The translations under genes were made by a program, and so were the position numbers. The notes beneath the pieces are model-generated. The model was not told where the DNA came from. It was given only the letters and a program-made list of their open reading frames with translations, and made no database searches. From Macrostomum lignano (Eukaryota), in NCBI GenBank assembly GCA_002269645.1, contig NIVC01001427.1, positions 227,146 to 281,799 on the forward strand: a DNA stretch of 54,654 bases, read 5' to 3'. Positions 50,801-53,800 of the stretch are shown here, one piece after another; the first letter of the stretch is position 1; each line of letters begins with the position of its first letter.

Positions 50801-53800
50801 CAGACAGACACACAGACAGACAGACAGACAGACAGACACACAGACAGACAGACAGACAGACAGACAGACAGACAGACAGACAGACAGACAGACAGACAGA
50901 CACAGACAGCAGACAGACAGACAGACAGACAGACAGACAGACAGACAGACAGACAGACAGACAGACAGACGGACAGACAGACAGACAGACACACAGACAG
51001 ACAGACAGACAGACAGACAGACAGACAGACAGACAGACAGACAGACAGTAAACCTCCCCATTTGGCACGGGACGCACCAGGTGCTGACCAGCGAGGACTG
51101 GAACATGGTGATGTACGCGGGCATTCGCTCGCAGCGGACTGCCAACTCGTCCGGGATGTGGGCCGCGGCCTACTTTGTGATTCTGCTGCTCTTCGGCAAT
51201 TGTATCCTTTGCAAGCCACCGGGATTTCGCGAGGGGGTCCCAGAGTTTGATTGACAGTTTGTGCTTTGTTACTGTGCTCTTAATGCAGCACGAGACTCCA
51301 GAGTTTTCAGTTGTACATGAACTACCACATGCATCCGCAATCCATGAAGTCCCGAATGCTTTCCCAGTTGTGTAAAAGTTTTTTTTTTGACCAAGCTTCT
51401 GCAAATGACTCGCATGCCTCTCTGCCGGCGATGCCCGGTCCCAAACTCAGGCTTCAACCTTTGCCCGAATATCCATGTCCGCCAGCATTTCCTATCCGCT
51501 GGAAGACTGGATCAGCCCTGACATGGCTCATTTAAATCAGACGCAAATCGAATTGAGATAATAATTTGTTTATTCGTTCCACCGCGCCGCCCAGATTCTG
51601 ACAGGAGAGGACTGGAACCTCGTGATGTACTATGGCATCAGGTCGCAGGTGGGGTGGGCCAGGGCATGGCCTACGCCACGTATTTCATCCTGCTGGTGCT
51701 GTTTGGCAACTGTATCCTAGCAACAGCTGGCTTATTCAATTTTAATACATAGTTTATCACTTTTTTGTTTATTTCTTCACACTATTAAGCTTACTTTCGC
51801 TCTATCTTCATTTTTTCTAAAAAAAGTCCTACAATTGAGTTTCAATTTTACTCTGTTGCTAAGTTAGCTTTCATTCTGAGCACTTTCGGCGGCACTCCTC
51901 ACTGGTAATGGGCTGCTTTACCTTGGGGCTCCGGACACCGCACACCAGTTCAGTTCAAGGCTGCAACTCTCACGGAGCGATCAGCGTGCATGCTGACTTC
52001 TGCATTGGCTTATTTTATTAATATTTAAAAATTGTTACAATACGCATCTCGCTAGCTCATTGCATATTTTAATTCTATATAGCAAGCATGCCGGTTTTCA
52101 TTACAAATCAGAGTAGCTGACTTGGGTTTCTTGGAAACCGGGGCACTTGAGCACTGGCGTGAGAAGTGTGAACCAACTGGAATGTCAAAACCGACTGCTG
52201 GAGAGCAGAGGATGGGGGAGCACTGTAGTAAAACTGATGCAGGATATTATTGGCCACAGTCTCTTTAGCAGCAGCAGCAGCAGCGGCGGCTACTCATCAA
52301 TCAAACCACAAGCTGAGGGAGCAGGGGGGACCCCGGGACAACTGAGGAAGAGAGGAATTTTTGAGCAGGCAAAAATGATGAAAGTTTTTATTGGCACAGA
52401 GACCGGGACGAGGAGAGTCCAGGAGACTGGTGATGGGGCGGCAGCGGCAAGTTTGAACAGTCAATGAGAGAACTGCGATTGTAAAGTGCACAGCCCGGCT
52501 CCATCTGAGCTCCCAGTCTGGCTCTCCCCCAGATTCCAGCTCTGCGTGCTGCACGAGCGTGCAGCTGAGCAGAAGCGTTAAGCTGCCAATTGAACTTTGA
52601 GTAACAATAAATTCTATCGCATAATATCGGTATGAACGTTGCTTATTTAATCGCTACTGATTTCTCCTATTCACTGCCTGAGAACTATTTAAACTACAAT
52701 ATCTATTTGCATTTATACAGCCTGAGTTTACCTTGCACTTGTCTGACTCGTGCTTAGAGTGCGCACTTTTCGGCATGGAAATGCCTGCGAACTTCACGTG
52801 TTTTCCGAATTTTCCTTAACCTAATACAACCGAAAACCAACCGCGTCAAGACACTCTATTGAACGTGTTTCTGGCCATCGCCGTTGACAACTTGGCGAAT
52901 GCTCAGGAGCTCACGGCCATGGATGAGCAGCGCGAGAACGAGGAGAAAGAGGTGATGAAGGGGGAGAACTCTGTGGGATGCAGCTGAGACTCTCGGCTAT
53001 TTAAATTTGTCTCTAAGTGTCTAGGCTAAAAAAATAAGGTCCCGAAGGTCCCGAAGGTCTCGAAGGTCCCGAAGGTCCGAAGGTCCCGAAGGTCCCGAGG
53101 TCCCGAAGGTCCGAAGGTCCCGAAGGTCCCGAAGGTCCCGAAGGTCCCGAAGGTCCGAAGGTCCGAAGGTCCCGAAGGTCCCGAAGGTCCGAAGGTCCCG
53201 AAGGTCCCGAAGGTCCCGAAGGTCCCGAAGGTCCGAAGGTCCGAAGGTCCCGAAGGTCCCGAAAGGTCCCGAAGGTCCCGAAGGTCCCGAAGGTCCCGAA
53301 GGTCCCGAAGGTCCCGAAGGTCCGAAGGTCCCGAAGGTCCCGAAGGTCCCGAAGGTCCCGAAGGTCCGAAGGTCCGAAGGTCCCGAAGGTCCCGAAGGTC
53401 CCGAAGGTCCTACATTGCCTCCTCACACTCCCGCCCGCTCCCACCGAACTCCGACATCAAAGAAGCGAGAGGAGATGCTGCGCACGGAGGCCGAGGCCGA
53501 GGCCGAGCAGGCGGATCCCGCAGCGGCGACGTCGAACGCCCCGATGCTGAACGTGGTGCCGCCAACGCCGGGCCAGCTGATGAGCTCGTCTGCCGAGCCG
53601 CAAAGGTTCGACTAGTAAGCGCCTGGAAGCATGCAAATTCATGAAGCTTCGGTAGGGTTTCCAGACTATCATTTGCAACCAATGCGTCCAAACTTCCGTT
53701 AAGCAGCTGCAAGGACTCAAGGGAGCCTGGCGAGGGCGACAAGCTCACATCGGAGTCGCGGCGACTGAACGGCCTGGAGGCGGAACGGGGAATCTTGAAT

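Follow-up and report, generated by a model that had tools for sequence, protein, structure and literature searches.

The DNA analysed here is a 54,654-nt stretch of Macrostomum lignano (assembly GCA_002269645.1, contig NIVC01001427.1, positions 227,146 to 281,799, forward strand; hereafter the window). On its forward strand lies a calcium channel gene of Cav2 type, represented by its 5′ half, which runs from about 36.2 kb to the window end. Within this gene, the exon that codes for the domain II selectivity filter and most of the IIS6 segment is present in two tandem copies, 16a and 16b. These are flanked by a mixture of splice signals, some of the U2 (major) class and some of the U12 (minor) class, that would permit only one of them to enter a given mRNA. 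Approximately 20 Cav2 exons, from the N-terminus to IIIS1-S2, were placed by tblastn with mollusc and flatworm Cav2 proteins. The gene product is a Pfam Ion_trans protein, and its named protein matches are Cav2. When ranked against the PDB, the human Cav2.3, Cav2.2 and Cav2.1 structures (E 1e-51 to 1e-48) precede Cav1 (1e-42), which in turn precedes Cav3. The top protein matches come from molluscs, flatworms and vertebrates at 58-78% identity, and several of the exon variants of the gene are flatworm-like in sequence. The domain II filter Glu-Asp pair is kept in both copies (‘EDW’), in keeping with a Cav2 alpha1 subunit.

The exons at issue were located with the same tblastn searches, and their boundaries were read from the sequence:

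49432..49504, + strand: exon 15, IIS5-P1 turret, with a complete last codon

51081..51201, + strand: exon 16a, the divergent version of the exon for the domain II filter, P2, loop and IIS6; 121 nt with the frame open, coding for 40 amino acids

51595..51711, + strand: exon 16b, canonical-looking copy (TGEDW, SQGGVGQGM); 117 nt as assembled, 118 nt expected

52851..52952, + strand: exon 17, coding for the last part of IIS6 and the first part of the II-III linker

Exons 16a and 16b are homologous and stand in tandem, with equal acceptor and donor phases and closely similar lengths (121 vs 117 nt, plus the one nucleotide expected in the latter). Each codes for the filter turn of domain II and the P2 helix, along with the P2-S6 loop and the greater part of IIS6. 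Glu at the filter and Asp beside it are present in both; the copies differ in the residue that precedes the Glu (TSEDW in 16a, TGEDW in 16b), in the P2-S6 loop and in IIS6, and 16a possesses an N-S-S sequon. A preliminary description of the window had put forward these two intervals as paralogous exon copies distinguished by the TSEDW and TGEDW filters and by the 16a sequon, and both the coordinates and the sequence differences are borne out.

The splice signals that surround the pair are as follows, with exon-intron boundaries marked by a slash:

49505..49513, + strand: U2-type donor of intron 15, CAG/GTGGGAAGG (CAG/GTGGGA), with no RTATCC motif

51202..51210, + strand: U12-type GT donor of exon 16a, GTATCCTTT; the exon ends T/GTATCCTTTG

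51712..51720, + strand: U12-type GT donor of exon 16b, GTATCCTAG; the exon ends T/GTATCCTAGC

51202..51594, + strand: hybrid intron of 393 nt between the copies, with a U12 5′ splice site, a pyrimidine-rich U2-type 3′ end and no TCCTTRAC

52810..52820, + strand: U12 branch site TTTTCCTTAAC before exon 17, its branch A about 31 nt from the 3′ splice site

Both copies are entered through AG acceptors with no TCCTTRAC upstream (..gcaccag/G for 16a and ..gcccag/A for 16b), and both are left through a GTATCCT donor. Between TTTTCCTTAAC and exon 17 lies an A/C-rich stretch that possesses no pyrimidine tract and ends ..gtcaag. Over the 20 nt upstream of each acceptor, the pyrimidine content is 0.50 for 16a, 0.70 for 16b and 0.45 for exon 17. 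Every element of the preliminary reading of these signals was recovered: ordinary acceptors and U12 donors on both copies, a U2-type donor (GTGGGA) on exon 15, and a U12 branch site at 52810 ahead of exon 17. The predicted layout is thus supported: it is exactly what a pair of mutually exclusive exons with a U2/U12 hybrid intron would have.

Both motifs are very scarce here: on the forward strand of the 54.6 kb, RTATCCT is matched four times (at 20682, 36569, 51202 and 51712) and TCCTTAAC twice (at 36745 and 52813). The only other complete set in the window, the donor at 36569 with the branch site at 36745, belongs to an intron in IS1 that serves as an internal control:

36569..36781, + strand: U12 intron of AT-AC type within IS1, conserved; donor ATATCCTTTT, 3′ end AC, branch site TTTTTCCTTAAC at 36742-36752

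This AT-AC intron is conserved across Cav and Nav channels (PMC6259924). Its branch site stands about 30 nt from the 3′ splice site, as compared to about 31 nt before exon 17, and the context of the two branch sites is equal. The fourth RTATCCT match, at 20682 (ATATCCTTTG), has no TCCTTRAC partner nearby and no obvious adjoining coding exon.

The U12 intron that follows the ‘LFGN’ residues at the end of exon 16 can be traced well beyond this gene. Of 320 homologous segments, 108 read ‘CIL’ past ‘...FGN’, and about 10 more read ‘CI’ followed by another residue; ‘CIL’ at this position is the translation of T/GTATCC, furnished by database open reading frames (ORFs) that were called on genomic DNA and run into the intron. 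Cav1-type fragments in the set read ‘ICGN/CIL’. At the exon 16 position of 80 metagenome loci, the donor is GTATCCT in 43, GTATCC[A/C] in 3, a near variant in 4 and GTAAGT in 2, while the intron has been lost in 28. Clonorchis and Lottia possess both GTATCCT and TCCTTRAC at this intron; in the cestode Schistocephalus, the donor has been converted to GTACGC. The 16a donor 10-mer, GTATCCTTTG, recurs among the orthologous donors. Minor introns 2 and 13 are described for rat Cacna1c (PMC8767276), and the Cav1-type fragments suggest that Cacna1c intron 13 is the ‘LFGN’ intron. Taken together, these comparisons support an ancient U12-type intron at ‘LFGN’, widely conserved in animals. Public gene models fail at this intron: Clonorchis P0176 skips exon 16, Lottia P0160 ends inside the intron (‘GNCILLL’), and Candidula P0201 reads into it.

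To compare the two copies, one G was restored in 16b, for analysis only. The copies are 62% identical at both the nucleotide and the amino acid level, with proportions of synonymous and nonsynonymous differences (pS and pN) of 0.68 and 0.29, respectively, and a ratio of nonsynonymous to synonymous substitution rates (dN/dS) of ~0.2. Exon 16b is 72-82% identical to its orthologues and 16a is 50-68% identical. Even so, 16a keeps 14/14 invariant columns of the exon alignment, in which 16a is itself included, and of five nearly invariant columns it keeps all but I1 (Val) and G4 (Ser). The second of these is the Gly before the filter Glu, present in 316/320 homologous segments. The only other credible TSEDW among the 320 is in P0236, a Cav1-type protein of the trematode Clonorchis sinensis; as TSEDW occurs naturally there, a channel is compatible with Ser before the filter Glu. 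In a neutral simulation at the observed divergence (substitutions only, indels uncounted), an open frame, the AG and GTATCCT survived together in 0.34% of runs. These data support an old duplication that has been under purifying selection, and the constraint together with the low neutral survival argues that 16a is not a decaying relic. The preliminary description had considered decay of one copy, with dN/dS of about 1 and a confirmed frameshift as its signature; the observed ratio is lower, and 16b contains a frameshift as assembled, as described below. An artefact of assembly or of haplotype duplication was ruled out, the copies being only 62% identical.

From these features, a model for the splicing of the pair emerges. 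The Cav2 filter/P2/loop/IIS6 exon, just upstream of the ancient GT-AG U12 intron, would have been duplicated with its own U2 acceptor and U12 donor. The resulting order would be a U2 donor (exon 15); a U2 acceptor, 16a and a U12 donor; a U2 acceptor, 16b and a U12 donor; and finally a U12 branch site and acceptor (exon 17). In this order, the exon 15 U2 donor could pair solely with the acceptor of 16a or of 16b, and the U12 donors of 16a and 16b could pair solely with the acceptor of exon 17. The 393-nt intron between the copies, a U12/U2 hybrid, would be removable by neither spliceosome. Owing to these limits on the pairing of donors and acceptors, exactly one copy should be present per productive mRNA, as in exons 6a/6b of MAPK8/9/10; we infer, from the genomic sequence, that the copies are in fact used and that their use is mutually exclusive. 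Tandem duplicate, either-or pore exons held apart by U2/U12 incompatibility are, in our assessment, the best explanation for the locus and probably the right one.

Judging from the predicted joins, the spliceosome lock is not the sole safeguard, since the frame also breaks upon double skipping or double inclusion. The reading frame could thus act as a backstop, with a premature stop following when both copies are skipped and when both are included: the 15-17 join reads ‘QTLY’ and then a stop, and 16a joined to an intact 16b produces a frameshift with a stop in exon 17. The choice between the copies would probably be settled at their acceptors, with the weak one of 16a competing against the pyrimidine-rich one of 16b. 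The better pyrimidine tract of 16b, together with the better U12 donor of 16a, suggests that 16b may be the default and that, as in JNK2, the use of 16a may be what is regulated. The isoforms would be told apart by Ser or Gly beside the filter Glu, by a loop open to glycosylation and by IIS6. We regard a more far-reaching version of the model as possible but rather doubtful. There, a pore swap in a presynaptic-type (Cav2) channel that affects the residue by the domain II filter Glu, a glycosylated outer loop and IIS6 would be enforced by the minor spliceosome, pore composition would depend upon U12 splicing and acceptor competition, and one further animal at least, probably a flatworm, would have acquired or kept the arrangement.

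Several observations, set out in this and the following two paragraphs, weigh against the either-or model. Two further features of the region are:

51648..51649, + strand: missing G in exon 16b, GG where GGG is expected (TCGCAG-GTGGGG vs TCGCAGGGTGGGG)

50154..51048, + strand: (GACA)n microsatellite of ~224 units and ~900 nt, within intron 15, ending 32 nt before the 16a acceptor

Exon 16b as assembled is out of frame, with codons 1-18 in frame 0 and the remaining 21 amino acids in frame 2, and the 15-16b-17 product as assembled meets a stop in exon 17. As it is the canonical copy whose frame is broken in the assembly, the two can be called only putative functional alternatives. This is the sole frameshift among the ~20 Cav2 exons of the window. 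An internal acceptor that would rescue 16b was considered and rejected, as no frame works. With the G restored, the G-rich run at 51648 reads GGGTGGGGTGGGCCAGGG, which is G-quadruplex-like. G-rich contexts of this kind are prone to sequencing errors. Given this error-prone run and a remainder of the exon that is near-perfectly canonical, we lean, by a modest degree, toward the gap being an assembly error or else a very recent or heterozygous lesion. The assembled length of 117 nt is a multiple of 3, so that inclusion of both 16a and 16b would restore the downstream frame; a chance effect of the 1-nt gap is the probable reason.

The splice signals themselves show three departures. The spacing of 31 nt between branch site and 3′ splice site before exon 17 is long when compared to the 10-16 nt of most orthologues, the 16a acceptor has a poor pyrimidine tract, and the A at +8 of the 16b donor is unusual, being found in 1/43 orthologous donors.

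The pair is also thinly spread. A second copy of exon 16 was present in 0/80 metagenome loci, 63 of which extend for at least 600 nt on a given side (the window copies lie 393 nt apart), and no tandem exon 16 copies were found in Lottia, Clonorchis or Schistocephalus. With the duplication missing from these 80 loci and three animals, deep conservation cannot be cited as proof of 16a use. One protein record, which counts in favour of the model, does read through a comparable pair: P0242 (UniParc UPI00060F11D9), of 138 amino acids and apparently flatworm-like, contains two tandem copies, the first divergent and the second canonical, each followed by the ‘CIL’ of U12 donor read-through and separated by 38 codons. 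Exon 16a is 51% identical to the first P0242 copy and cross comparisons give 50-57%, values that do not single the two out as orthologues. An exhaustive representative search returned no 16a orthologue with TSEDW and RTANSS; the loop nearest to that of 16a, ‘KRQNSSG’ (P0277/L001), comes from a single-copy exon. Same-species transcripts or ORFs were sought by protein search with 16a plus 17 and with a 508-amino-acid concatenate of exons, which yielded nothing above 82% identity, and an indexed search with 16a alone gave 0 candidates.

Three other explanations can be weighed against these data. Were the 16b frameshift real, 16a would be the sole productive pore exon, furnishing a TSEDW channel, and 16b would be either freshly dead or a ‘poison’ exon that leads to nonsense-mediated decay (NMD). 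We consider this unlikely, although several features fit: 16b is the only frameshifted exon of the ~20, its join to exons 15 and 17 ends within exon 17, its U12 donor is slightly off consensus alongside an intact 16a with an ideal donor, and Ser, as found naturally in the trematode P0236, is compatible with a working channel. Set against these are the otherwise near-perfect canonical sequence of 16b, with its 72-82% identity to orthologues and its intact splice signals, from which it follows that any inactivation would have been very recent; the location of the missing G within the G-quadruplex-like, error-prone run; and the preference for Gly before the filter Glu in 316/320 homologous segments. 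The reverse assignment, in which 16b is constitutive once an assembly error is allowed for and 16a a duplicate devoid of function that is seldom or never used, appears quite improbable. Such a duplicate could well have the weak acceptor of 16a, situated 32 nt past a 900-nt microsatellite, be the more divergent of the copies at 55-62% identity to orthologues, have lost the nearly invariant Gly, and be missing from most sampled animals. Yet with synonymous divergence near saturation, 16a has kept its frame, its phase, its AG and a perfect GTATCCTTT donor, along with all of the invariant columns and the nearly invariant ones but I1 and G4; a neutral relic would retain the frame and splice signals in <0.4% of simulations, indels excluded.

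A further explanation retains mutual exclusivity and attributes it chiefly to the reading frame and NMD, or to RNA structure or regulators, with spliceosome incompatibility being incidental. The out-of-frame outcome of both the double skip and the double inclusion would suit this view, and in a survey of human clusters of mutually exclusive exons, 60% have exon lengths that are not divisible by 3 (PMC5740500). Against it, no convincing competing RNA structure was detected: there are six short inverted repeats only, and the one that lies over the 16b donor folds no better than shuffled sequence (z = 0.24). Steric hindrance is inapplicable, the hybrid intron being 393 nt in length, and the signal layout would by itself forbid both aberrant joins. 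We hold it to be a poor prospect.

The either-or model, with U2/U12 incompatibility as the lock, has a close counterpart. Exons 6a/6b of MAPK8/9/10 are mutually exclusive exons with U2/U12 hybrid introns (PMC1874599; PMC5740500 Appendix Fig S18). There, as here, a tandem exon sits directly upstream of a GT-AG U12 intron and the 5′ splice site of each copy is of U12 type; the copies are separated by an intron that is U12 at its 5′ end and U2 at its 3′ end, and a pyrimidine-rich tract precedes the downstream copy. The two systems differ in that the former encodes a kinase and the latter an ion channel pore, in that one Cav2 copy is frameshifted in the assembly, and in that the Cav2 pair is known from sequence. 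In addition, the length of the Cav2 exon is not a multiple of 3, and the frame thereby adds a second safeguard. The JNK/MAPK precedent that the preliminary description had invoked is accordingly well chosen with respect to topology, and the Cav2 pair is, at the sequence level, a credible candidate for a new instance of a known mechanism.

Less apt is the parallel that had been drawn to pore exons that switch ion selectivity. NALCN exons 15a/15b and invertebrate Cav3 exons 12a/12b are alternative exons of the domain II pore region (PMC4436565, PMC3557258, PMC9694082), and they share with the present pair a place in the pore module of domain II, in a cation channel of four domains, and an occurrence in invertebrates. 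However, the NALCN and Cav3 exons vary at the filter residue itself (E/K) or at a lysine of the turret, upstream of the filter, and switch the Na/Ca preference, whereas both Cav2 copies keep the filter Glu followed by Asp; as a consequence, a NALCN-like selectivity switch is not indicated. We found no evidence of U12 signals in the NALCN and Cav3 pairs. Mutually exclusive duplicated exons are likewise present in other alpha1 genes of high-voltage-activated calcium channels, namely exons 8/8a of Cav1.2 (IS6) and the IS4A/IS4B and I-IIA/I-IIB exons of cacophony, but these are at other positions of the channel and none adjoins the U12 intron.

Searchable literature yielded no description of a Cav2 domain II filter/IIS6 exon pair, in keeping with the preliminary description, whose author was aware of no pore pair in a Cav2. 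For Drosophila cacophony, IS4 and I-II pairs are listed and a domain II filter/IIS6 pair is not (PMC11828482); for Aplysia Cav2, a domain IV pair is listed and, again, a domain II filter/IIS6 pair is not (PMC10657410). A human survey counted five U2/U12 mutually exclusive clusters, with MAPK8/9/10, MAPK14, CEP170 and CRTC1 named in the figure legend (PMC5740500). Natural examples in which U2/U12 incompatibility enforces mutually exclusive exons are very few, and one more, in an unrelated gene, would be a useful natural replicate with which to study hybrid introns and exon choice. An alternative Cav2 exon for the domain II filter and IIS6, if true, would also be a ready-made experiment on a nearly invariant Gly (316/320) and on IIS6. 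On the practical side, the U12 introns and duplicated exons at this locus break automated gene models.

The channel gene contains two more tandem exon pairs. The IS3-IS4 exons, at 40995-41087 and 41686-41790, both have U2-type donors, and the IS4 pair so formed resembles that of cacophony. The first-type IS3-IS4 exon is the type used by the annotated Aplysia and cestode proteins, and in Lottia the exon is present in three copies (L004 11305-11394, 11587-11661 and 12550-12654). The IIS3-IIS4 exons lie at 46458-46571 and 47239-47355, the first of them apparently with a GC donor (AG/GCAAGT); the first type resembles the single Schistocephalus exon (L002 50884-50997) and the second type the Clonorchis exon (L003 58881-58994).

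Rfam and tRNA scans of the window gave no matches. Large simple repeats occupy the introns around the 16a/16b pair at 50154-51048, the microsatellite listed above, and at 53036-53410 and 53857-54059; a 9-nt AAGGTCCCG array lies directly past exon 17, and after it comes one of 12-nt units. At 10013-11171 on the forward strand, some 25 kb upstream of the channel gene, is a separate gene for an EF-hand protein (Pfam EF-hand_7, E 2e-21), which is interrupted by proline/serine-rich repeats.

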